DNA of 64,000 bases from Mantamonas sphyraenae STR306 (GCA_026936335.1 JAPMXV010000046.1:186001-250000), one strand, 5' to 3'. Shown: positions 24,301 through 39,888, counted from the stretch's first letter. Notes: generated by a model not told the origin, from the sequence alone. Made by a program: numbers and translations.

Positions 24301-27300
24301 AAGGTCGTGCCTCCTCCGGGCAAACCTGCCGAGAAGGACGTGTGCGGCGTGTGTGCCGGCGACGGCACAAGCTGCCTCGGCTGCGACGGCAAGCACTACC
24401 CTCAGGGCAACAAGAAGGTGTATGACCAGTGCGGTGTGTGCGGCGGCAACGACGCGACGTGCACAGGCTGCGACGGCAAGGTCGTGCCCCCTCCGGGCAC
24501 TCCGGCCAAGAAGGACGTGTGTGGCGTGTGTGCCGGCGACGGCACAAGCTGCCTCGGCTGCGACGGCAAGCACTACCCTCAGGGCAACAAGAAGGTGTAT
24601 GACCAGTGCGGCGTGTGCGGCGGCAACGACGCAACGTGCACAGGCTGCGACGGCAAGGTCGTGCCTCCTCCGGGCACTCCGGCCAAGAAGGATCCGTGCA
24701 ACGTGTGCGGAGGCGACGGCTCTAGCTGCGCTGGCTGCGACGGCGTGCCCAACTCGGGCAAGAAGTACGACCAGTGTGGCGTGTGCGGCGGTGACAGCTC
24801 GAGCTGTGCTGGCTGCGACGGCGTGCCCAACTCGGGCAAGAAGATCGACGTCTGCGGCGTGTGCGGAGGCGACGGCAAGGACTGCCTCGGCTGCGACGGC
24901 GTGCCCAACTCGGGCAAGAAGCTGGACAAGTGCGGCGTGTGTGACGGCGACGACTCGACATGCAAGGGCTGCGACGGCGTGCCCAACTCGGGCAAGAAGT
25001 ACGGCCCGTGCGGCATCTGTGACGGCGACGGCAAGACCTGCCTGGGCTGCGACGGCAAGCATTTACCCAACGACCCGTCCAAGCGCCCCGTGATCGACAA
25101 GTGCGGCGTGTGCGGCGGCGACGACACCAGCTGCGCAGGATGCGACGGCGTGCCCAACTCGGCAAGAAGAAGAACGACGCATGCAACGTTTGCGACGGAG
25201 ACGGCAAGAGCTGTCTCGGATGCGACGGCAAGCACTACCCCAACAACCCTGCATCGCGCCCTGTGATCGACAAGTGCGGCGTGTGCGGCGGCGACGATTC
25301 GTCCTGCCGCGGCTGCGACGGCCAGCTGTACCCCAACGGCAACAAGAAGATCTACGACGCCTGCGGCGTGTGTGACGGCAACAACAGCACGTGCACGGGC
25401 TGCGACGGCAAGGTGGTGCCGCCCTCTCAGGGCACGCCCACCAAGAAGGATCAGTGTGGCGTGTGTGGCGGCGACGACTCGTCGTGCACAGGTTGCGACG
25501 GCAAGGTCGTGCCCCCTCCGGGCACTCCTGCCAAGAAGGACCAATGTGGCGTGTGTGTGGCGGCGACGACTCGTCGTGCACAGGCTGCGACGGCAAGGTC
25601 GTGCCCCCTCCGGGCACTCCTGCCAAGAAGGACCAAATGTGGTGTGTGCAAGGGCGACGATTCGTCGTGCACGGGCTGCGACGGCAAGGTCGTGCCTCCT
25701 CCGGGCACACCCAAGTCGCGAGACGCCTGTGGTGTTTGTGACGGCGACGGCAACAGCTGCCGCGGTTGCGACGGCGTGCAGCACTCGGGCAAGAAGTACG
25801 ATAAGTGTGGCGTGTGCGACGGTGACGACACCAGCTGTGCAGGCTGCGACGGCGTGCCCAACTCGGGCAAGAAGTACGACGCCTGCGGCATCTGCGACGG
25901 CGATGGCAACTCGTGCCTGGGTTGCGACGGCAAGCAGTACCCGAACGACCCGTCCAAGCGCCCGCTGAACGATGCCTGTGGCGTGTGCGGAGGCAACGGC
26001 AGCTCTTGCTTGGGCTGCGATGGCAAGCACTACCCGAACGACCCGTCCAAGCGCCCGCTGAACGACGAATGCGGTGTGTGCGGCGGCGACTCCACCTCGT
26101 GTGCAGGCTGCGACGGCGTGCCCAACTCGGGCAAGAAGTACGACGAGTGTGGCATCTGCAACGGCAACGGCAACTCATGCTTGGGCTGCGACGGCAAGCA
26201 CTACCCGAACGACCCGTCCAAGCGCCCGCAAAACGACCAATGTGGCGTGTGCGGCGGCGACGACAGCAGCTGTGCAGGATGTGACGGCGTGCCCAACTCG
26301 GGCAAGCAGTACGACGCCTGCGGCATCTGCAACGGCGACGGAAAGAGCTGCCTCGGATGCGACGGCAAGCACTACCCGAATGACCCGTCCAAGCGCCCCG
26401 TGCTGGACCAGTGCGGCGTGTGCGGCGGCGACGACAGCAGCTGCGCCGGATGTGACGGCGTACCCAACTCGGGCAAGAAATACGATCTGTGTGGCGTGTG
26501 CAACGGCGACAGCAGCACCTGCAAGGGCTGCGACGGTGTGCCCAACTCGGGCAAGGTGTTTGACGCATGCGGCGTGTGCGGCGGCGACGGCTCCAGCTGC
26601 GCAGGATGTGACGGCGTGCCCAAGTCGGGCAAGAAGTACGATCCATGCGGCGTGTGCGACGGCGACGGAAGCACGTGTGCGGGATGTGACGGCGTGCCCA
26701 ACTCGGGCAAGGTGTACGATCCGTGCGGCGTGTGCGGCGGCAACGGCTCTAGCTGCGCTGGCTGCGACGGCGTGCCCAACTCGGGCAAGAAGAACGACCC
26801 GTGTGGCATCTGCGACGGCAACGGCCAGAGCTGCGCCGGCTGCGACGGCGTGCCCAACTCGGGCAAGGAGTACGACGCCTGCGGCGTGTGTGCAGGTGAC
26901 TCGACCTCGTGCGCTGGCTGCGATGGCGTGCCCAACAGCGGCAAGAAGTACGACGCCTGCGGCGTGTGCGGAGGCAACGGGCAGAGCTGTGCCGGGTGCG
27001 ACGGCGTGCCCAACTCGGGCAAGGAGTACGATGCGTGCGGCGTGTGTGGCGGCAACGGCCAGACGTGCGCAGGTTGCGACGGCGTGTCCAACTCGGGCAA
27101 GGTGTACGACCAGTGTGGCGTGTGCGGAGGCGACAACAGCGCTTGCCGCGGATGCGACGGCGTGATTGTGCCCCCTGCCAACGGTCAGCCGGCCAAGTAC
27201 GACCTGTGTGGCGTGTGTGGCGGCAACAACAGCACGTGCACTGGATGCGACGGCGTGATTGTGCCCCCTGCCAATGGCCAGCCCAAGGCGTATGATGCCT

Positions 27301-28712
27301 GCGGCGTGTGCGACGGCAACGGCCTGAGCTGCCTGGGCTGCGACGGAAAGTTGTACCCCAACGGCGGCAAGCCCGTGTACGACCAGTGTGGCGTGTGTGC
27401 GGGCGACAACAGCGCGTGCACAGGCTGCGACGGCGTCGTTGTGCCTCCTCCGGGCACACCCACAGGATACGACCAGTGTGGCGTGTGCGGAGGCAACGAC
27501 GAGAGCTGCAAGGGTTGCGACGGCGTGGTCAACTCGGGCAAGACGTACGACGTGTGCGGCGTGTGCGGTGGCAACGGACAGAGCTGCCTGGGATGTGACG
27601 GCGTGCCCAACTCGGGCAAGGTTTACGACCAGTGCGGCGTGTGCGGAGGCGACAACAGTGCATGCACAGGCTGTGACGGCGTGATTGTGCCCCCTGCCAA
27701 CGGCCAGCCCAAGGCGTACGACGTGTGTGGCGTGTGCGGTGGCAACGGACAGAGCTGTCTTGGATGCGACGGCGTGATCAACTCGGGCAAGGTGGTCGAC
27801 GCATGCGGTGTGTGCGGAGGCGACAACGGAACGTGCACAGGATGCAACGGCGTGCCTGTGCCGCCGCCCGGATCCCCGGCGACGTACGATGCGTGCGGCG
27901 TGTGTGGCGGAAACGGCCAGAGCTGCGCTGGATGTGACGGCGTGCCCAACTCGGGCAAGCAATACGACCAGTGTGGCGTGTGTGACGGCAACAACGCATG
28001 CGTGGGCTGTGATGGCGTGGCTGTGCCCAACGGCGAACCGGCTCAATACGATCCGTGCGGCGTGTGTGGCGGCAACGGCCAGAGCTGCGCTGGATGTGAC
28101 GGCGTGCCCAACTCGGGCAAGGTGTACGACCAGTGCGGTGTGTGTGGCGGCAACGACGAGTGCGTGGGCTGCGACGGCGTTCCCAACAGCGGCGCACAGC
28201 TGGATGCGTGCGGCGTATGCGGCGGCTCCGGCAGGCGCTGTCTTGGCTGCGACGGCGTGTTTGGCAGCAACAAGAAGTACGACCAGTGTGGCGTGTGCGA
28301 CGGTGACGGTAGCACGTGCCGTGGCTGCGACGGCGTCCTGAACTCGGGCGCCACGTACGATGCTTGCGGCGTTTGCAACGGCGACAACAGCACGTGTCTG
28401 GGTTGCGACGGCGTGCCCAACAGCGGCAAGGTGTTTGTCAACGGCGTGTGCGGAGGCAACAACACCAACTCGACAAGCAACGGCAACCAGCAGGCGGCGG
28501 TCACAAGCGGCCTGGTGGCCGGTGCGGCCGGAGGCGTGGGAATCCTGTCCTACTGGCTCAAGAAGCAGCTGGGATTCAGCGGTTCGCATGCCGAGATGAT
28601 GGACGACGTCGACAATGCGTTTGCCTTCCAGGACAGTCCGCTCTACGACGGCTTTGGCGACATGGGAAGCCAAAACCCTCTGTACCAGGCGCCAGAGCTT
28701 GGAGACGCGTGA
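21357..28712 (+). CDS. Type I membrane surface protein: signal peptide, 3 CUB-like domains, ~58 Cys-rich repeats, TM helix, NPxY tail (four apparent indel frameshifts)
   Basis: Signal peptide [21 protein letters not shown] and four introns in 21437-22508. CUB-like CW.I/V..RLRF..F.LES..V.....ITLTFHS....FSA.W domains at ~22220-23620. Tandem DxCGVCGGDxSxCxGCDG repeats. TM segment [24 protein letters not shown]. Tail SPLY...NPLY. Confidence 0.85.
23629..28460 (+). repeat. Coding tandem array of ~58 degenerate Cys-rich units (~75-95 bp)
   Basis: Recurring tgcggcgtgtgcggcggcgac ... ggctgcgacggc with several alternative linker types. Counted by hand from the translation. Confidence 0.95.
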
Positions 28713-28832
28713 TGAAGGGAAGGGATGGAAACTGATGAGGGGGAGATGAGGGAAGCAAAAAGAAAAGCGTGCTTGACCCTTGCCACGAGACCACGAGTTT
28801 TGTTGTTGTTGTGCTCTGTGTGAGGCAAAGCG

Positions 28833-29530
28833 ATGTCGGCGGGAACCGGAACCGGCCAGCAGCGGGAGCTGGCGGCCATCGGGATCCGCGTTGCGCAGCA
28901 GTGGGTGGAGGAGCAAGGATGGTCTTTGGCAAACTATAGCATTAGCATCAGCTCTGTGCAGTCGTGTCCAGAGGGCCTGTTGAGCGTCGACGCGTCGCAC
29001 CTGGCTCACGCCGCAGACCTCGCTTCGCCCCTGTCGCCCAAGGAGAGGCTACGCAGGTCGCGTGTGCTTGTGAGTGGATGGGAGAGATGGGAGGGAAGAG
29101 GGGGAGGGAAGAGGGGGGAAAGGGAGAGGGAGAGGGATCAAGCTGACACAGAGCGCAGGAGATCGATGTAGAAGAGGGTGCTGTGGATGAGGTGCTTGCG
29201 GCACGGGACGAGTCGATGTTGCAACGGATAACAGGTGTGGAGGCACTGCATGTGCGTGCAGAGGAGCTGGAGGACAAGATCGAGCAGAGCAGGGCGCGGC
29301 AGCGGTTCTTTGAGACGGCCACGGACGAGGAGGTGGAGACCATGCTGCAGGTGGAGTATGCAGGAGGGACGGGTGGAGAGGAGGAGGGAGGACAGGATGA
29401 GGAGGAGGAGGACGGGGCGCTGGATGCGACGGTGGAGCAGGTCGGAGAGGAGAGGAGGAGGAGGCGGAAGGGCAAAGCAAGGGTGGAGGAGATTGGAGAG
29501 GAGGTGGAGGAGGAAGAGGCAGCGTGGTGA
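28833..29530 (+). CDS. Acidic protein of unknown function (~200 aa, two exons), copy 1
   Basis: Exon 28833-29069 (MSAGTGTGQQ..RSRVL), GTGAGT...CTGAC...CAG intron 29070-29158, in-frame exon 29159-29530 (EIDVEEG..EEEEAAW). Confidence 0.65.
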
Positions 29531-29927
29531 CGTGGTGACGAGGATGGGATCACACTTGGGGCTGGTGGGGATGTTTTTGGCATGGGATGGGTGGGATGGA
29601 CGAGTTCCAGGGAATGGGCGGGTTTGCAGCGAGGGGCCCCGTTTCGTCGAAGGCGGCAGGGCGGCGAAAGGAGGGTGGCTGGGGGAGAGTTGAAAAGGGC
29701 CCGGGCCGCGAGTGCGCAGGGTGGAGCAAGTGAATGCGATTGGGCCACGGCTACTTGATCTGGACACAGAGCAACAGGAGCAGAAGCACGAGTCAACGCA
29801 GCAGGGAGAACAACAACCACGCAGCAACAAGGGCAACGAGCCACAGACAAGAGAAATCATACAGGAGAGGCGAGAGTCAAGAAGAAGCATGAGCAGCCAC
29901 ACGAGCAGGAGAGAACGAATGAGGAGG

Positions 29928-30452
29928 ATGGGGGACGAAGATGACAAGGAAGTGTTTGGGAACGAAGGGGAGTTTGAGACGGGGGCGGAGACGTCGATGA
30001 CGAAGGCGGTGGGGGCGAATGAGGTGCGTGTGGGGTCGTACCTGATGGTGAAGGGCACACACCCGTGTCAGGTGACGTCGCTGGAGCGGTTCCAGAACGG
30101 GAAGCACGGGGGAAGGAAGATGACGGTGGTGGGACGGTGTCTGCTGAGCGGGAAGCGCGTGGAGGATGCGTTCTCGTGCCACGACCGTCTGGACGAGCCC
30201 GTGGTGGAGCGGGCAGACTACATGGTGGTGGACATCCAAGACGGGTATCTGGCAATGCTGGATGAGGCCGGAGAGATGCGGGAGGACGTGGCGATGCCCG
30301 AGGACGAGCAGCTGGCGATGGAGATTGAAGAGAGCATGGAGAAGGCGGAGGGGTCGAGCATGGAGGAGGCGAGGGAAGTGTATGTGCAGGTGATGCGGGT
30401 GATGGGCAAGGATGTCGTGCTGGGGGTCAAGACGAAGAAGGTGTCTGCGTGA
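29928..30452 (+). CDS. Divergent eIF5A-family protein, copy 1
   Basis: VRVGSYLMVKGTHPCQV, GKHG, DYMVVDIQDGYLAMLDEAGEMREDVAMPE and VYVQVMRVMG match the eIF5A layout. The hypusine loop reads ERFQNGKHGGRK. Confidence 0.88.
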   Translation: MGDEDDKEVFGNEGEFETGAETSMTKAVGANEVRVGSYLMVKGTHPCQVTSLERFQNGKHGGRKMTVVGRCLLSGKRVEDAFSCHDRLDEPVVERADYMVVDIQDGYLAMLDEAGEMREDVAMPEDEQLAMEIEESMEKAEGSSMEEAREVYVQVMRVMGKDVVLGVKTKKVSA

Positions 30453-30512
30453 TGAGTTGAGAGGGAGAAGGGGTTTGTGAATGCAGGGATGAGGATTGTA
30501 CATTGCATGGGA

Positions 30513-32660
30513 TCACAGAGTGGCCATCCAGTGCATCACGCGCGAAAACAGCTCGTCCGGGAGTGTGCTCCACAGAGCAGTGGGCTCATACGCCTGCATG
30601 TCACCAGCCTCAAACATCACATGTCGTTCCTCAGAGTTCATCACCATTGCCGTCTCCAAAGCCTCGTCCAGCTGCGACGACCCACCAATCCAATGCCATT
30701 CCTCCCTCCAACCCCGTTCCTGCACCATCTCCCACGCACTGGGGCAGAATGCATAGCCTTGGAACCGAACTGGTTGCAGCCACGGATCTGCACCAAACTC
30801 ACGTGCGACATCCACAACTTCGGCGTTCTGGCATCGAATGCCCACTTCAAGGATGGATCGTTCATCCATGCCGTCGTCCACCGACCATGGCATGGCGTCC
30901 ACCGGTACCCCGTCCTTCAGCAGCCTCCGTACACCCTCCACATCCCCCGACTCTGCACGGAGGACCATCTCCTGCGCACGACGACAGTTCCTGCTGGCCA
31001 GATGGGCCCCACCCCCCGTGTTCCACCTGCCCATGCTCAGCAGCGTGGTGTTGGACGACAGATCCTGAAATTCGCTGCCCCGGTCGATGCAGACCACCAT
31101 CAACCTCGGATTGCGCAACAGCGACGACTCCAACGCCGGGAATGCCAACTGCGGGCCGAAACTGGGTTGAATCATGTTCCCTAGAAACCGAAAGTCCCGC
31201 AAGCCTTGGTTGTCTCCCAGTGCTTCCATCAGCTCCACCATCCCATCTGCGTCATAGTCGTTTACCAGAGTGTATCCCAGGTTCAGATGCCTCAGGGTGG
31301 AGTTCTTCCGCACCATGTGTGCCACCAACGGCAGATCCTTTGCCTTGATGGGCCACTTCCTCATGTCGCAGTAGTGCAAGCTAGTGTTGTCTGCCAGAAT
31401 CCCCAGCATCGTTTGCACCGTTTCAGGATGCGTGCGTATCATGTAGCCAACGTTGAGATGCACCAGAGTGCTGTTGTTTGCAAGGCCGTCCAGGAACGCT
31501 TCTTCGTCTTCCAAGTTTGCCACCTCGGGTGCATGGGACGATCCATAGGCGATGTTCAGATGGGTGAGCACATCGTTGGTGGCCAGCGCTTGGCCAAGGT
31601 AGAACAGAAACCTTGTCGTGACTCTCCGAACTTGTGCCATGGCAAGCTTGCGCACAAATCTGTTGTTGATCATCCACTTCGACACGGTGCACAATGCCTT
31701 GCCGGACATCGTGCACTTAATGAACTCGAGGGATTGCAAGCATTTGTGCACATTCAGGACTTTGAGGAGCGAGGCCACGCTGTTTGCACTCACGTTGCTG
31801 CTCTTGATGTGGAGGTGGCGCAGTTTGGATCCTTTAAGTCCCGCTTCAAGCCCGTCCAGCGACTTGCACTTGACCTCCAACTTTTGCAAACAGTCCCAGC
31901 CACTCAAAGCCTCGCCCAACTGGGCTCCATCTGTGTCATTGTGCTTCAGACCGATGGCAAGGTGTTCCACACGAGCGTTGTGAAGAGCTGCCACCGTTCG
32001 GTGACCAACTTCGTTGAGGATGAAGCGCAGCTGTTCCATGCGCCTGTCACTCAGTGCCTCCACGATGGCAGCTCCAGCTCGGTCCTGCACACCCACGTAG
32101 TTCAATGTGAGGCGCACGATGGACGATTGTGGCAACGCGGCCGCAAGGGCAAACGTCGCATCTTTGCCAATCACGTTTCTCGACAGCGTCAGCTCCTTCA
32201 GAGTCTGCTGAATCAACACAGTCACAAAGATGGTATTCAATGCCTCTAAAGAGGCCATCGACAGACTCTGGTACAGATGTAGAGACGTGAGTTGCGAGCA
32301 TGACAAGCTTGCGAGCTCGTCACGATCTTCGTTCAGCGCAAAATTCCACACAAAGGACGCAACCTTGTCCGTGGCCAGCAACGCAGCCGCCGTACCCTGC
32401 ACTCCCTCTCCGCAGGAGACGTCCAGGCGCCGCACCACGCCGTGGTCGAGCCGTTCCAGGGTTTCCACCAGTTGCGGCAGGGTTTCGTCCGTCAGATGCA
32501 CAGTGGCCTCTCCAAGGCTGGAAAGCAACGCCACACACCCATCAATATCGCCCCGGAGAAGCAAGCTTCCAACTGTGGGTGGGGCTCTCTTGAAATTGCC
32601 ACTCAGAGACCCCAAAGACCCAGCAATCAAATTGAATGGTTTTCGCGTGTTTGGTTTCAT
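30513..32660 (-). CDS. RNI-like (NLRC3-type) LRR protein with one ankyrin-like repeat and a C-terminal F-box/PRANC-like motif
   Basis: LRRs such as LATNDVLTHLNIAY, LANNSTLVHLNVGY and KNSTLRHLNLGY. Ankyrin-like AESGDVEGVRRLLKDGVPVD...GADP. Ends in WSTLPDELFSRVMHWM. Likely ATG 32660, just past the ARMC2 stop. Intronless. Confidence 0.8.
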   Translation of the reverse strand: MKPNTRKPFNLIAGSLGSLSGNFKRAPPTVGSLLLRGDIDGCVALLSSLGEATVHLTDETLPQLVETLERLDHGVVRRLDVSCGEGVQGTAAALLATDKVASFVWNFALNEDRDELASLSCSQLTSLHLYQSLSMASLEALNTIFVTVLIQQTLKELTLSRNVIGKDATFALAAALPQSSIVRLTLNYVGVQDRAGAAIVEALSDRRMEQLRFILNEVGHRTVAALHNARVEHLAIGLKHNDTDGAQLGEALSGWDCLQKLEVKCKSLDGLEAGLKGSKLRHLHIKSSNVSANSVASLLKVLNVHKCLQSLEFIKCTMSGKALCTVSKWMINNRFVRKLAMAQVRRVTTRFLFYLGQALATNDVLTHLNIAYGSSHAPEVANLEDEEAFLDGLANNSTLVHLNVGYMIRTHPETVQTMLGILADNTSLHYCDMRKWPIKAKDLPLVAHMVRKNSTLRHLNLGYTLVNDYDADGMVELMEALGDNQGLRDFRFLGNMIQPSFGPQLAFPALESSLLRNPRLMVVCIDRGSEFQDLSSNTTLLSMGRWNTGGGAHLASRNCRRAQEMVLRAESGDVEGVRRLLKDGVPVDAMPWSVDDGMDERSILEVGIRCQNAEVVDVAREFGADPWLQPVRFQGYAFCPSAWEMVQERGWREEWHWIGGSSQLDEALETAMVMNSEERHVMFEAGDMQAYEPTALWSTLPDELFSRVMHWMATL

Positions 32661-32724
32661 TCTGGATGCGTTGGGGCAGCACTGCACTGCACACGTCGAC
32701 CCACTCACACATCCACCCAAGCCC

Positions 32725-35700
32725 TTAGCCTTCATTGTCCTGTGCCACGGGAAGCTCTTCCAGCATGGACTCTGTTTGCTGTGCTCGCGCTTCAATGTCA
32801 TCGTGCATTGTGACAATGTCGTCGAGGTCTTCCAGGAGGGGCATGGCCACCTGTTTAAGTTCAAGGAGGAGAGAAGGATCGTGTGACTGTGGCGTGGCTG
32901 TGGCTGTGTCGAGAATGCGGCCGACAACGAGCTTGATGAGGTTGCACTCGTCACGGGTGAAGCACAGGCGGTGGCTGTGCTGCAAACGGAAGTTGTACAG
33001 GGTCTTGCAGACAGCCACAACCATGGCCAGATTGTGACTAAAACGATCCAGGACGTCGATGAGTTTGGTGACGCCTGCGGCGTCGCGTAGGATATCTGTG
33101 CACTGGCTATCGCTCATCAGGTTCATGAGCACGCCGCAAACATTGATGACAATGGCCTCCTCGTTGTGGTCCAGCAGGATGACCAGGGCTTCGTCCACAC
33201 GGTGCGACTGCATGAGCATGCGCACGTCGCCACTGCGGGAAAAGTTGCCCATGGCTCGTGTGGACTCGATGACAAACTCTTCGTTGTCGTGAAAGAGCAT
33301 GTCCTTGAGGATGCCCGTGTACTCCAGGCGTTTGTGCAACACGCGGTTGTCCTCACTGTCGTAGAAGGAGATGTTGCGCACCGCACAAACGAGATTGAGC
33401 TCCAGCTCCTCCAGGGCCTCGGTGCGTGTGTCATCGAGGATGTCCAGCAGCGTGTCGATGTTCTCGTGGGCGGCAATGCGGATACCAATGTTGGGATCGA
33501 TGGCCAGGTTGGCAATGACGCGCACAAGCTTCATGAGCACATCCGCCGTTGTGCGCACGGCTCGCTCTCCCTCGGCGTCCAGGTACAGCCGGCCATACTC
33601 TGCGAGGAGGCCCAAGAGGCCCGTGACACCCGACTCGCTGGCAATGACCTGGCGAATGTCGTTGGTGGAGGAGGAGAGGTTGCCGAGGATGAAGCACGCG
33701 CGGATGGCCAGATTGAGGTCGCTCTGGTGGGTGGCCAGGACGTTCTTGAGCTGCGAAATGTAATGTGGGTTCTCTTGGTAAAAGGCGCGAAATTCTGCGT
33801 GGTAGGTGAGCTTGCTGAGGATGCGCATGACGTGGAACATGAGCTCCGCGTGTGCTCCATACGCGAGGGTGAGGTCACTCAGCGGCTGCATGACATTAAA
33901 GACAAGCAACTGGGTGCGTTGTTGCTCGTCCAGGGAGAGGTTGCGCAGTGTGGCAGTGACCTGAATGTACAGCTGGGCGAGCTTGAGAGCACGCGCCTCG
34001 TCTAGCTCGCTTGCCTGGGCGGCCTGGTCGTCGATTTCCGACTTGAGGAGTCCAATGAGCACGGGGATAGCGCCGTGGTGTGTCAGCTGCGCTTGGTTTT
34101 TTCGATTGATGGAGGCATTCTTGAGGGTGCCCACGGCAAAGAGCATGATCTCAAAGTTGAGTTCGCCCATGTCCAGAATGTGCAGGAGCGGGGCAAACAG
34201 TTGCTCCTCGCGGAATACGCCGTCATTGTGTTCGTCTTTGCTGAGTTTGAACAGCAGCTTGCAGATGTTCTTCATGCTACGCGAGTTGGTCGTGGTGATT
34301 TTCAGCGAGATGCGCGCAATCTTGAGCAGCACAGACACAGACGAGGTGTCCATGTACTGGAAGAGACACTTGAGGATGTGCTTGCGTTTCAGACCTTGGG
34401 TGTCGCTGTAGGCCAGGAAGTGGTACTGCTCCAGCACCATGTACAAAGAGTCGAGCACGGTTTCCAGCGTATGTACATCCATGCACTCTGGCTCCTCGTC
34501 GTCAAACAACTCGTCGTCGTCGCGCAGATGCTCGGCCAACAACCGTTGCTGCTCCTCAGCCTGCTCCTGTGCGTCCAACGCTGCCTGGCTGCCCTCCAGG
34601 GGCACAAGAAGCGACAGCAGCTGCTGTACGTTCATCCATGCCAGCTGTTCGTCCTTATTCGATGGTGCCTCAATGTCCCCAAAGCTGCTCGAGCGTTGCA
34701 TGCGATGCTCCCCTTGTGCGTCATCCGCGGTGTCGTCTTCACTGTTGCGTGCAGCCAGAACGGAGGAGGACACGGCCCCGGAGGAGAAGGGCGACGAGGT
34801 TGTGACACGCACCGATCCACTACTGCTGCTGCTACTGCTGCTGCTGCTGCTACTATTGCTGCGTGGGTTGTGTTGCAGGTCATTGGCGGATGAAGCACGC
34901 ACGGGTGGCCGTGGGTTGCCAGACGGCGGCCGAGGACGACGCCCGGGCCGACCCGACGGCGGGCGTGCTTTGCCCTTGCGTGACGGCGGACGGCCTGTGA
35001 ACGGAGTCAGCGGTGAGAGAAGAGCAGAAGAGGAGAGAGACAAAGCAGACGCAAAGTGGAGAATGAGTGTGGGGGGGCTGGGGTGGTGTGGGAACAAACC
35101 TCGTGATGTAGAGTCGCCGCCATCGTCTTCTGCTTCGTTGCCTTCTTGGGCATCTCGCTCAGCCTGCAGGGCATACTCTTGTTCCAGGCGCACCTGAGCT
35201 TGTTGATACTCTTCTGAGGAGCGTGTCGGGTGGTGGCGGATCATCGTGTGGCGGTCGTCAGAGTGCACTTTGAGAACTTGGGCCTGGGCCTGGGCGCTCG
35301 GTTGCACTTCCTCCTCAGCATCCTCGTATGTAAAGCTGTCTTCCTCCTCGTCGCCGCTGCTGCCGCCTTCATTGTCCTCCCCGCCCAGTCGGCTGTCTCC
35401 CATGGCCGTTTCAGGCCGTTCGAGGTCGCTCATAAACACGGCACGGTTCATGCTGCAGTGCGCGCGAAAAACGTCCGGGTCAGCCGAAACCAAACCCTCG
35501 TCAGGGCGGCCATGGTACTGCGTGGAGGAAGAATGGGCAGGTGGCAATGGACATGCATACAGGTGGAGGGAACCTACGCGTAGGAGGAACTGGGTCGCGC
35601 CTGGGGTTTGTACTCTCCGGGACGAAACAAGCGGCGTTGCGACCCATCCATGGGCGTCTGAGGACGCGTAGGACGTGCCAGCGACGCACGTTTACGTGCA

Positions 35701-35759
35701 CCGCGCATGGCCTTTGCCAGCGTGGTCGACGGGGCCATCGGGTCTTCCGGCTCGCTCAT
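32725..35759 (-). CDS. ARMC2: Armadillo repeat-containing protein 2 (flagellar radial-spoke transport adaptor family)
   Basis: N-terminal RPQTPMDGSQRRLF..RPSSSYA motif plus ARM repeats (LFKLSKDEHND, VGTLKN, VTATLRNL, RILSKL, FILGNL, KLVRVIANL, RNISFY, RAMGNFSR, CGVLMNL). Exons ~35759-35580, ~35452-35100, ~34994-32725. Confidence 0.85.
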
Positions 35760-36008
35760 GGTGGACGGGCAAAACGCGTCGTGCAGTTTTGGCTCGGCAG
35801 GCGTTGTCCCACAGTTCAGTTTCAAAGGTGCACAAGGCGACAAAACGATGCACAGCGGACGCAGAGAGTAAAAAGCGCAAGGGGGGAGGTTGTCTATTCA
35901 TCGAGTATCAACATGGAGGCCTGGAGGGAGGGGAAGAAGGGACCAGGAATTGCCCCACGAGGGATCAGCTCGCTTCAGGGCGTCCTGACTGCGTTTGCAA
36001 GGGCAGAC

Positions 36009-36356
36009 TCAAAACAGTGTGGACTTTTGCGGAACCTTGCGTACAGAGAGGACGCCAAATTCGATGAACTTCATGTCGGCTGCGGTAAGGTGGTCACTGC
36101 TGGAGCTAAGGGGGTTGCCGGCATCAGCCAGCTCAACTTCGTCGACGTGCCAGCCTGTCATGTCAGCCACGCGGTTTTTGATGTCCATCATGGTGTCGAA
36201 GGAGTGGACGGTGAAGAGGCAGCGCCCAGAGGGCATGCGCAGCACGAGGGGAAATTTGTCCACGGAATCCATGGTTTCGTGCTCTCCCATGAGAACGGTC
36301 TCTTCCATTTTAATGTCAGCCTCCACGTTTTCTTCGTTGTTGAAGGGCGTGGACAT
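36009..36356 (-). CDS. Small protein with possible ubiquitin-like fold
   Basis: LVLRMPSGRCLFTVHSFDTMMDIKNRVADMTGWHVDEVEL..G.PL resembles a beta-grasp pattern. The 3' end may splice (GT ~36035) to a short last exon near 35987-35964. Confidence 0.5.
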   Translation of the reverse strand: MSTPFNNEENVEADIKMEETVLMGEHETMDSVDKFPLVLRMPSGRCLFTVHSFDTMMDIKNRVADMTGWHVDEVELADAGNPLSSSSDHLTAADMKFIEFGVLSVRKVPQKSTLF

Positions 36357-36602
36357 GGAGGTGAGGTGAGGTGGTGGGTGGGTGGGGTGCTGGGGAAGTT
36401 TTGGTTGGCGAAGGAGGCGGAACGCAGCTTGACTCAGATGATTGAGGCTGGTGACATGCAGGCGTATGAGCCCACTGCTCTGTGGAGCACACTCCCCGAC
36501 GAGCTGTTTTCGCGCGTGATGCACTGGATGGCCACTCTGTGATCCCATGCAATGTACAATCCTCATGCCTGCATTCATAAACCCCTTCTCCCTCTCAACT
36601 CA

Positions 36603-37127
36603 TCACGCAGACACCTTCTTCGTCTTGACCCCCAGCACGACATCCTTGCCCATCACCCGCATCACCTGCACATACACTTCCCTCGCCTCCTCCATGCTCG
36701 ACCCCTCCGCCTTCTCCATGCTCTCTTCAATCTCCATCGCCAGCTGCTCGTCCTCGGGCATCGCCACGTCCTCCCGCATCTCTCCGGCCTCATCCAGCAT
36801 TGCCAGATACCCGTCTTGGATGTCCACCACCATGTAGTCTGCCCGCTCCACCACGGGCTCGTCCAGACGGTCGTGGCACGAGAACGCATCCTCCACGCGC
36901 TTCCCGCTCAGCAGACACCGTCCCACCACCGTCATCTTCCTTCCCCCGTGCTTCCCGTTCTGGAACCGCTCCAGCGACGTCACCTGACACGGGTGTGTGC
37001 CCTTCACCATCAGGTACGACCCCACACGCACCTCATTCGCCCCCACCGCTTTCGTCATCGACGTCTCCGCCCCCGTCTCAAACTCCCCTTCGTTCCCAAA
37101 CACTTCCTTGTCATCTTCGTCCCCCAT
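36603..37127 (-). CDS. Divergent eIF5A-family protein, copy 2
   Basis: Translation from ATG 37127 is identical to copy 1 (one synonymous AAG/AAA change noted). Confidence 0.88.
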   Translation of the reverse strand: MGDEDDKEVFGNEGEFETGAETSMTKAVGANEVRVGSYLMVKGTHPCQVTSLERFQNGKHGGRKMTVVGRCLLSGKRVEDAFSCHDRLDEPVVERADYMVVDIQDGYLAMLDEAGEMREDVAMPEDEQLAMEIEESMEKAEGSSMEEAREVYVQVMRVMGKDVVLGVKTKKVSA

Positions 37128-37523
37128 CCTCCTCATTCGTTCTCTCCTGCTCGTGTGGCTGCTCATGCTTCTTCTTGACTCTCGCCTCTCCTGTATGATT
37201 TCTCTTGTCTGTGGCTCGTTGCCCTTGTTGCTGCGTGGTTGTTGTTCTCCCTGCTTCGTTGACTCGTGCTTCTGCTCCTGTTGCTCTGTGTCCAGATCAA
37301 GTAGCCGTGGCCCAATCGCATTCACTTGCTCCACCCTGCGCACTCGCGGCCCGGCCCCTTTTCAACTCTCCCCAGCCACCCTCCTTTCGCCGCCCTGCCG
37401 CCTTCGACGAAACGGGGCCACTCGCTGCAAACCCGCCCATTCCCTGGAACTCGTCCATCCCACCCATCCCATGCCAAAAACATCACCACCAGCCCAAACT
37501 GTGATCCCATCCTCGTCACCACG

Positions 37524-38200
37524 TCACCACGCTGCCTCTTCCTCCTCCACCTCCTCTCCAATCTCCTCCACCCTTGCTTTGCCCTTCCGCCTCCTCCTCC
37601 TCTCCTCTCCGACTTGCTCCACCGTCGCATCCAGCGCCCCGTCCTCCTCCTCCTCTCCACCCGTCCCTCCTGCATACTCCACCTGCAGCATGGTCTCCAC
37701 CTCCTCGTCCGTGGCCGTCTCAAAGAACCGCTGCCGCGCCCTGCTCTGCTCGATCTTGTCCTCCAGCTCCTCTGCACGCACATGCAGTGCCTCCACACCT
37801 GTTATCCGTTGCAACATCGACTCGTCCCGTGCCGCAAGCACCTCATCCACAGCTCCCTCTTCTACATCGATCTCCTGCGCTCTGTGTCAGCTTGATCCCT
37901 CTCCCTCTCCCTTTCCCCCCTCTTCCCTCCCCCTCTTCCCTCCCATCTCTCCCATCCACTCACAAGCACACGCGACCTGCGTAGCCTCTCCTTGGGCGAC
38001 AGGGGCGAAGCGAGGTCTGCGGCGTGAGCCAGGTGCGACACGTCGACGCTCAACAGGCCCTCTGGACACGACTGCACAGAGCTGATGCTAATGCTATAGT
38101 TTGCCAAAGACCATCCTTGCTCCTCCACCCACTGCTGCGCAACGCGGATCCCGATGGCCGCCAGCTCCCGTTGCTGGCCGGTTCCGGTTCCCGCCGACAT
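37524..38200 (-). CDS. Acidic protein of unknown function, copy 2
   Basis: Inverted duplicate of 28833-29530 with the same intron. Differs by an A/V substitution and a 7-aa in-frame indel (EEEGGQDEEEED vs EEEED). Confidence 0.65.
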
Positions 38201-38283
38201 CGCTTTGCCTCACACGGAGCACAACAACAACAACACTCGTGGTCTCGTGGCAAGGGTCAAGCACGCTTTTCTTTTTGCTTCCC

Positions 38284-39888
38284 TCATCTCCCCGTCATCT
38301 CCTTCGTCCACCCTGCTTCAAAAGCATGGGCAACGTCGGCAAGCCGCGCATCCTCAAACTGCCCTGCAAGCAGCTGCACTCCCCGCATGGGTCCTGTGGG
38401 CAGAGAGACAGCTGGCAACCCCGCCAAGTTGGCGAGTACATGCATGGCCACACTGACGTCGTACAGACGCACCGTGTCGTCCTGAGGCGTGTGCAGCGGC
38501 CACGGTTGGGTCACCGCCGACGGCGTCAACATCACATCCACATGCTGTGCAAACTGAGCTCGGAACTGTGCGTGGAGCATGGCACGCAGCCGCATGGCGC
38601 GGTCGTAGTAGCGCGAAAAGCCGCCCCGAGTGAGCACCCACGACCCGGTCAGGATGCGCCGTTGCACAGGGACTCCAAACGCCTCTGTGCGGTTGCGTGC
38701 TGTGATGGAATCCAGCGTGTGAATGGTGTCGTCGTCGCTCAGGGCCGTGTGGCCGTATCGGATGCCGTCGTACCGCGCCAGGTTGGACGACGCCTCTGCC
38801 GGGCTCAGAATAGAATAAATGGACAGGGCGTACTTGATGAGAGGCATGTCGACTGCGTGTACAGACGCACCCAGCGCTTGCACATGCTCCACTGCTCGCT
38901 GCCAGTCCTGGAGCACCTCTGCGTCCAACTCCTTCATGTTTGCCTGCACGGGGACCCCCACACGCACGCCATGCAGTGACCCTTCTGTTGTAACCGCGTC
39001 ATTGTCGTGTGCCCACATGCGATCCACCGATTCACTCAGCGCTGTGTGCACCTGGTCCGCCCGTCCAACCGTCGTCGCGTCTTGCGCGTCGTTGCCCATG
39101 CACACAGCCACCACTGCGGCAGCGTCGGCCACACTGGTTCCCAACGCACCCACTGTGTCCATGCTTGACGCATATGCAATCAGTCCGTGCCGACTCAGCG
39201 TGCCGTACGACGGCTTGAACCCCACAAGCGAGCAGAACGCAGCCGGCATGCGCACAGACCCTCCCGTATCGGAACCCAGTGCTGCACACACCTGGTTGGA
39301 CGCTACAGCTGCGGCACTCCCACCCGAGCTGCCTCCTGGCACCAGCGCCGCTTGCAAAGCCGCGTCGTCGACATGCTCCAACGTCCCGTGCTCCTGCACA
39401 TGCGCCTGCAACGACGGCGACAGGGGATTCAGAACGGCGCCGTGTATGCTTTGGCTGTTGTCGCTGCCCATGCCAAACTCGTCCATGTTGGTCTTTGCCA
39501 GGATGATCGCCCCGCTCTCACGCAGTTTCCGCACTACCGTCGCGTCGTACCCGGCCATAAACTCTCGCAACATGCCCGATCCCGCCGTTGTGCGCATGTG
39601 TGTCGTGCAAAGGTTGTCCTTGATTCCCAGTGGCACACCGTCCAGCCATGACAACGCAGTGCCTGCTGCCCGACGCTTGTCTGCAGCTTCTGCCTCGTCC
39701 AGTGCCCGTTCGCCCTGTTCCACATCCACCAGCGCGTTCAAACACTTGGCGCTCGCCATGTTGTCCAGACACGTCTGCACAAGCTGCACCCTGCTCACCT
39801 CCCTGCGTGCAAACATCTCGCTCCTGGTCACCCTCGCGCCCTCCCAACCAAATCCATCCAAAGACTCGCTCGTTGGTCGCCCATCCAT
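38284..39888 (-). CDS. QRSL1: Glutamyl-tRNA(Gln) amidotransferase subunit A (amidase signature)
   Basis: GVPLGIKDN, TTAGS, KTNMDEFGMGS, PGGSSGGSAAAVAS, GSDTGGSVRMPA, GFKPSYG, EASSNLARYDGIRYG, RRILTG, ANLAGLPAVSLP. Start is either ATG 39888 or ATG 39816. Confidence 0.92.
   Translation of the reverse strand: MDGRPTSESLDGFGWEGARVTRSEMFARREVSRVQLVQTCLDNMASAKCLNALVDVEQGERALDEAEAADKRRAAGTALSWLDGVPLGIKDNLCTTHMRTTAGSGMLREFMAGYDATVVRKLRESGAIILAKTNMDEFGMGSDNSQSIHGAVLNPLSPSLQAHVQEHGTLEHVDDAALQAALVPGGSSGGSAAAVASNQVCAALGSDTGGSVRMPAAFCSLVGFKPSYGTLSRHGLIAYASSMDTVGALGTSVADAAAVVAVCMGNDAQDATTVGRADQVHTALSESVDRMWAHDNDAVTTEGSLHGVRVGVPVQANMKELDAEVLQDWQRAVEHVQALGASVHAVDMPLIKYALSIYSILSPAEASSNLARYDGIRYGHTALSDDDTIHTLDSITARNRTEAFGVPVQRRILTGSWVLTRGGFSRYYDRAMRLRAMLHAQFRAQFAQHVDVMLTPSAVTQPWPLHTPQDDTVRLYDVSVAMHVLANLAGLPAVSLPTGPMRGVQLLAGQFEDARLADVAHAFEAGWTKEMTGR

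Follow-up and report, generated by a model that had tools for sequence, protein, structure and literature searches.

The subject of this report is a pair of long inverted repeats in a 64,000-nt stretch of DNA from Mantamonas sphyraenae STR306 (GCA_026936335.1 JAPMXV010000046.1:186001-250000). We refer to the whole stretch as the window, and positions are counted from its first letter. Each repeat arm carries an orphan gene together with a diverged paralogue of eIF5A, and the arms enclose three further genes. The explanation that we favour, with slightly better than even confidence, is that a single small duplicative inversion, in a protist genome that is compact and diploid, left this locus behind as its scar. 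According to the genome paper (PMC10492846), the genome is diploid and its genes are mostly mono-exonic; the sequence was assembled from PacBio data with Illumina polishing, and the FALCON primary assembly amounts to 25.06 Mb in 78 contigs with 59.19% G+C. The G+C content of the window itself is ~60%.

The left arm occupies positions 28734-30618 (1885 bp, with solid identity over 28740-30613) and the right arm positions 36437-38299 (1863 bp), and a repeat search together with a MAFFT alignment shows them to be inverted copies with 5818 bp between them. In the MAFFT alignment, near-identity runs from arm end to arm end, and beyond both ends the sequence is unrelated. The repeat search resolves the arms into three collinear inverted blocks with an identity of ~99%, and in a global alignment the arms differ by two indels, of 21 bp and 1 bp, and by 18 substitutions. 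An earlier note on this DNA had described near-identical inverted copies, each with an orphan gene and an eIF5A-like gene, and had argued that their differences speak against a read-duplication artefact. Alignments and Pfam confirm the description, and the argument also holds, the duplication being real and its arms being separated by those substitutions and the 21-bp indel. Besides the two arms, the window contains no inverted repeat of 60 nt or more. The arm unit is present in exactly two copies in the 25-Mb assembly (25,061,354 bases, 78 contigs), and the other genomic matches to the arm are short, consisting of a gene-family module and acidic low-complexity sequence. Pfam searches detected no transposase or recombinase domain in the arms, interior or flanks, and no tRNA gene or Rfam family was found in the part of the window from 24 to 42 kb.

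The likely polarity of the rearrangement emerges from the arm ends, each of which contains the tail of a gene that is whole on one side only. At the inner end of the left arm lie the last 34-35 codons (30513-30618) of an interior gene, here called LRR-type, and this gene is whole only on the left. The inner end of the right arm carries an orphaned copy of the last 34 codons (36438-36542, plus strand), with an F to I change relative to the left copy; this orphaned tail was re-found as a 94%-identical partial match in the search for the module family described below. Similarly, a GatA gene is whole only on the right, where its stop codon and last 4 codons (38284-38299) make up the outer 16 nt of the right arm. 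The 16-nt copy of these 4 codons and stop at the outer end of the left arm (28734-28749, minus strand) serves no gene. The earlier note had placed both tails in this way, and translation of the two genes agrees with it. Truncated copies of the boundary genes are found at both novel junctions and whole genes at the old junctions, the GatA part of this evidence being short. Because the whole genes lie on opposite arms, in a diagonal arrangement, the pattern fits a single duplicative inversion.

How might such an inversion have proceeded? In the proposed ancestral order, a surface-protein gene would have been followed in the same orientation by a ubiquitin-like (UBL) gene, an armadillo-repeat (ARM) gene and the LRR-type gene, convergent with the eIF5A-like gene, the orphan gene and GatA on the other strand. 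The segment that begins a little upstream of UBL and reaches 16 nt into the end of GatA would then have been inverted, and the 1.87-kb stretch from the LRR-type gene's final 34 codons to the GatA stop codon would also have been retained in place, leaving two inverted copies and every gene unbroken. Either of two routes could produce this outcome: end joining after breaks with a 1.9-kb stagger at one side (as single-strand nicks or in two sister chromatids), or a replication event with two switches and the same effect. The order implies an ancestral spacing of ~100 nt between the surface gene and UBL, which is in line with the 84 nt that separate GatA from the orphan gene today. The earlier note had proposed a staggered-break inversion. 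The tail pattern suits its ancestral order and a single event, but template switching, or insertion plus a flip, gives an identical sequence. Judged from the sequence, staggered nicks, sister-chromatid breaks, a two-switch replication error and an inverted insertion with a subsequent flip would look alike.

Short-read evidence on the arm junctions comes from Logan contigs of four runs (X1-X4) of one study of the same species, which were compared with positions 28520-34500 (5981 letters). In X1 and X2, a 670-nt contig crosses over from the flank with the surface gene and covers the first 36 nt of the arm (the 28520-28769 region) with zero mismatch. It stops at 28769, the end of the last 31-mer that still holds the flank-specific base 28739, as expected where a path from a second flank joins the same repeat. 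In X3 and X4, contigs join the arm at 28734, and the 30 letters of flank that they carry are those of the GatA side of the right arm. At the inner end, the arm contig of X2 reaches no further than 30613, and another contig, of 776 nt, begins at 30584 and does not re-merge, so that this end has a second continuation and not a bubble caused by a single-nucleotide polymorphism (SNP). The arm contigs have a depth 1.2-1.7x that of their neighbours, a ratio that fits two copies when SNP-bearing k-mers are allowed for and is not decisive. Of the four runs, X4 is RNA-like, with a spliced contig and very uneven depth, and X3 has the appearance of a noisy, low-depth run. A loose end at 30901 in X1 and X2 was considered as a rearrangement and rejected, as it maps to a paralogue on another contig (C34); a loose end of X4 at 33661 has no match within the window. 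Within the interior, positions 31330-32310 are represented by two haplotypes at a depth of ~1:2 (24 versus 56 at 32174-32310) and with 1-1.6% divergence, and at places there the assembly follows the shallower haplotype.

Both genes of the arm unit are intact in both copies. The orphan gene spans 28833-29530 (plus strand, ~202 aa) in the left arm, with exon 1 at 28833-29069 and exon 2 at 29159-29530, and 37524-38200 (minus strand, ~195 aa; coordinates mapped from the arm alignment) in the right. Its 89-nt intron (29070-29158) is of the GT..AG type and in phase 0, and is precisely skipped in one X4 contig. The C-terminal half of the product is acidic. Database searches used the single exons and returned no Pfam match and no usable Atlas look-alike, and the frame of the joined model was checked for length only. 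Relative to the left copy, the right copy has three synonymous changes, one A-to-V replacement and an in-frame deletion of 7 codons. The eIF5A paralogue lies at 29889-30452 (plus strand, 187 aa from the first ATG) and 36603-37166 (minus strand); the two proteins are identical and their genes have one synonymous difference. Its assignment comes from Pfam matches to PF01287 (1.6e-14) and PF21485 (2.4e-10). Genome-wide, eIF5A loci comprise these two arm copies and one other, on contig C31, and nothing more. The loop around the hypusine lysine is altered in the paralogue, and the C-terminal half is acidic and rich in insertions. A word-based protein search detected no homologue of the eIF5A-like protein, and an exact-protein look-up of this protein and of a 189-aa open reading frame (ORF) across the right inner junction gave no match.

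The distribution of differences between the arms is informative about their history. Noncoding sequence differs at 11 of 520 nt and the LRR-type tail at 2 of 106 nt, and the coding sequence of both arm genes differs at 5 of 1170 nt. Of the five coding differences, only the A to V replacement is non-synonymous, and the 21-bp indel corresponds to seven codons of an acidic tract and keeps the frame. Since the differences are mostly synonymous and in frame, both copies must have remained functional for some time. At neutral sites the arms have diverged by ~2%, which is close to the allelic divergence of the interior. Purifying selection would have maintained both copies of both arm genes since the inversion, and gene conversion between the arms has probably homogenised them in part. 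The arms also have a distinctive composition: GC skew is about +0.32 at 28001-30000 and -0.30 at 36001-38000, with values of about 0.03-0.1 in the interior genes, so that the purine skew of the coding strand in these two arm intervals is much stronger than in the interior genes.

The same architecture occurs elsewhere in this genome. Our census covered 264 kb of one contig and four loci. When 264 kb of contig C46, which includes the window, were compared with themselves by BLAST, exactly two inverted pairs were found, the present locus and a pair in the RPL18A region (C46:268943-270371 and 277951-279379). The latter has inverted arms of 1429 bp with 16 substitutions and a 7.6-kb spacer that contains Sec8-like and Pcf11-like genes, and the last nine codons of THOC2 lie within its right outer end. 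Sensitive settings revealed no older, diverged inverted pairs in the 264 kb and did detect direct repeats of 65-98% identity. Whole-genome Pfam searches uncovered three more pairs. PABP, identified by its MLLE domain, forms an inverted pair at C28:50101-60669 with arms of at least 2811 bp and 99.6% identity, its domain matches being ~7 kb apart, and RPL23A forms another at C60:268312-275484, with 2305-bp arms, 98.1% identity and a 1.1-kb spacer; in each case these are the genome's only two copies. Two of the three pirin copies are also inverted, with matches 3.3 kb apart and arms that were not aligned. In all, four further pairs were verified (RPL18A, PABP, RPL23A and pirin), and the three that were aligned are 98-99.6% identical. 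ORFs that cross the arm boundaries of these other pairs include too many spurious frames, at 60% G+C, for the diagonal pattern to be read.

Perhaps these loci are samples of a general pattern. A tentative hypothesis, to which we give a little less than even credence and which the census supports in part, is that the genome of this deep-branching protist contains about a hundred blocks of 1-12 kb, each bracketed by an inverted duplication of 1-4 kb with genes in it, that the copies are ~98-99.6% identical with none decayed, that only inversions which duplicate their breakpoint genes survive where spacers between genes are ~100 nt, and that ongoing gene conversion keeps the arms alike, with continued flipping of the blocks as a by-product. 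If the census holds, this genome could be a tractable system for studying how compact genomes tolerate inversions, and could reveal the pace at which inverted repeats are homogenised and the frequency with which they flip. PABP and RPL23A, with two copies each, would then sit in pairs of this kind. For annotation, the warning is that many 'single-copy' genes here may be near-identical inverted pairs. The available portion of the genome paper (PMC10492846) contains no discussion of inverted duplications, and the word 'inverted' refers there to a microscope.

Several considerations weigh against a single duplicative inversion with staggered breaks. The ancestral order depends on gene fragments of 105 nt and just 16 nt, and the protein collection holds no relative near enough for a comparison of synteny, the best GatA match being 42% identical. 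At the novel junctions, the pentamer GATGA stands directly outside the solid identity, and the base adjacent to it is mismatched between the arms. These junctions have no long homology: the flanks are unrelated past the arm ends and share 4-5 nt, GATG(A). The occurrence of GATGA at both novel junctions hints at joining guided by microhomology, not at blunt joining of staggered breaks. Arms of the other pairs reach at least 2.8 kb, which is long for the version of the model with single-strand nicks. Regarding the short reads, the 36436|36437 junction is backed only by the assembly and the X2 branch point, the short-read contigs having been compared over 28520-34500; depth ratios are below 2, contig depth being a quantity not equal to copy number; and the runs, which probably come from the assembled culture, provide an independent technology and not an independent sample. 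As for the pentamer itself, a role as a general cleavage or recognition motif was rejected, with GATGA occurring at a near random rate in the window and missing where the arms of the RPL18A and RPL23A pairs end. It may represent microhomology or chance, as opposed to a recognition site.

Could the right arm have arisen without any inversion, the left unit having been copied into the 3' terminus of GatA, and inverted in the process, by two microhomology-mediated template switches? Replicative repair is error-prone near its junctions, and the mismatches by both junctions would suit such a process, as would the identical pentamer at the two ends of the new copy. This genome also produces many inverted duplicates, and a GatA origin for the outer end of the left arm has only those 16 nt behind it. 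Nevertheless, the ancestral GatA would have needed 40 further codons, running past the UBL start codon, and the diagonal pattern of whole genes would become a coincidence; the pentamer, moreover, is not common to the RPL18A or RPL23A pairs and hence is no general signal. An inverted insertion would be possible given the GatA extension, and we regard this less likely course as improbable. Much less credible still is an assembly artefact in which one unit was written twice, whether through mis-joined haplotypes of a heterozygous simple inversion or through chimeric PacBio reads. The organism is indeed a heterozygous diploid, the arm divergence (1%) resembles the allelic divergence of the interior (13 differences in 795 nt; paired contigs at 32174-32310), and both the low arm depth ratios and the probable identity of the runs with the assembly's own data would be compatible with such an error. 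It is difficult, however, to see how it could account for Illumina contigs that contain both outer flank-arm junctions and a non-reconverging inner branch, considering that a heterozygous simple inversion yields no read linking the UBL side to the inner end of an arm. Chimeras from missed adapters or amplification lead to palindromes that lack unique flanks on both sides, whereas the arms here have four such flanks, and the same architecture is present at the four other loci checked, including the genome's only two PABP copies.

A related question is whether the arms still recombine often enough for the culture, or the two haplotypes, to contain the 5.8-kb interior in either orientation, with the assembled form perhaps being the flipped isomer of an inverted insertion. 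Arms of 1.9 kb with 99% identity, 5.8 kb apart, are a good recombination substrate. The inverted pairs in the 264 kb are all 98-99% alike and none is older, alongside direct repeats that extend over 65-98%. In the three pairs for which both ends were available, the density of differences between arms rises ~4x in the terminal 150 nt (pooled p = 5e-9), as would be expected if gene conversion homogenises the centres of the arms, and arm contigs that are mosaics of left and right alleles occur in all four runs. Against this, bubble-popping by a k-mer assembler also gives mosaic contigs, and the edge effect at the present locus is largely one of coding constraint (central noncoding sequence differs by 1.9%, the ends by 2.7%). 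FALCON placed one orientation in the primary contig, and the available contigs are k-mer contigs, none of which spans an arm. We consider the coexistence of both orientations unlikely. The earlier note was right that a crossover between the arms would spare every gene, the sole change being the F to I replacement in the LRR-type tail: no ORF is lost in either isomer, and UBL is preceded by the same arm sequence in both. The evidence speaks against its flip-flop cassette in a functional sense, with no recombinase, tRNA or RNA gene in or near the structure and with a flip that alters no gene or upstream region and leaves the isomers functionally equal. The yeast 2-micron plasmid encodes its own site-specific recombinase (FLP/FRT), which acts on short sites, and the isomers of the plastid inverted repeat are equimolar in multicopy genomes. 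Those systems share with the present one two inverted repeats around a unique region, two isomers and intact genes, but the locus described here is nuclear and single-copy and has no recombinase gene. Ordinary homologous recombination between the arms could harmlessly re-invert the interior, and this ability to flip, which we infer from the structure, would involve no regulated switch.

Duplicative inversion, the origin that we prefer for this locus, has known counterparts, of the staggered-break class, in the Drosophila melanogaster group, in which 17 of 29 inversions carry inverted duplications of unique breakpoint sequence of up to ~1.9 kb (PMC1885836). In both cases, non-repetitive, gene-bearing sequence that would have been present once ancestrally now occurs twice, inverted, at the ends of a segment, just one of the two breakpoints is duplicated, and partial gene copies at the novel junctions reveal the polarity. 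The arms described here correspond to the top of the Drosophila size range, ~1.9 kb. The Drosophila duplicates, in contrast, have mostly decayed (mean identity 88%) and are presumed non-functional, whereas both genes are intact twice here at 99%; the inverted segment here is merely 5.8 kb, and its ancestral state is reconstructed without an outgroup.

Two further systems resemble the locus in its potential to flip. Candida albicans, likewise a heterozygous diploid microbe, has long ORF-containing inverted repeats through which inversions, changes in copy number and loss of heterozygosity arise (PMC6591007). These repeats are ~1.7-3.2 kb long, more than 99% identical and ~11 kb apart, and contain whole ORFs plus intergenic DNA; the present arms are comparable at 1.87 kb, 99% identity, two ORFs per arm and a 5.8-kb spacer. 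Repeats of like size and identity invert their spacers in C. albicans by nonallelic homologous recombination (NAHR), and by analogy any flipping at the present locus would be general homologous recombination. Inversions between C. albicans isolates were proven by PCR and sequencing, whereas one orientation is seen here. Human 'toggling' inversions (10.1101/2021.12.20.472354) also consist of a unique segment that NAHR can invert between near-identical inverted duplicates; they extend from tens of kb to Mb and their recurrence was established from many haplotypes, against one assembly here. The kind of rearrangement is already known, and its recurrence in this genome is the part worth following. 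The locus would be a clean case, in an organism that is neither animal nor fungus, of an inversion with a duplicated breakpoint region, through which two expressed genes, including the divergent eIF5A paralogue, now exist in two copies, and the architecture recurs across the small, gene-dense genome of a lineage near the base of Amorphea.

The genes that surround the arms complete the description of the locus. On the left, a gene for a long Cys-rich repeat protein, the surface gene of the proposed order (25101-28712, plus strand), contains ADAMTS_CR_3-like repeats by Pfam and 78-nt repeat families, and its stop codon lies 21 nt ahead of the left arm. The right flanking gene, GatA, encodes an amidase (38284-39888, minus strand; Pfam Amidase, 2.3e-109). 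The three interior genes are all on the minus strand: the LRR-type gene (30513-32810), the armadillo-repeat gene (32725-35547) and the gene for the small ubiquitin-like protein (36009-36356), the ATG of which is 80 nt from the right arm. For these three the earlier note had used the names LRR-ANK, ARMC2 and UBL, which receive uneven support. Arm repeats pass the Pfam threshold (8.8e-7, with a partial ARM_ARMC5 match), but LRR_6 (E 0.058) and ubiquitin (E 0.041) are weak matches below the cut-off, and 'LRR-type' and 'UBL' serve here as provisional labels.

The C-terminus of the LRR-type protein belongs to a larger family. Its last ~50 residues (30516-30680, minus strand) end in an LPDELF...-type motif, and this module closes at least 150 long ORFs genome-wide (319 candidates). 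Many of these ORFs are in tandem arrays, for example on contigs C73, C70, C69, C29 and C15. They make up a very large, lineage-specific family whose members share an F-box-like C-terminus. A separate tandem array, with a period of 66 bp, a length of 3.2 kb and units that are ~98% alike, lies at C46:153698-156862, 32 kb to the left of the window.

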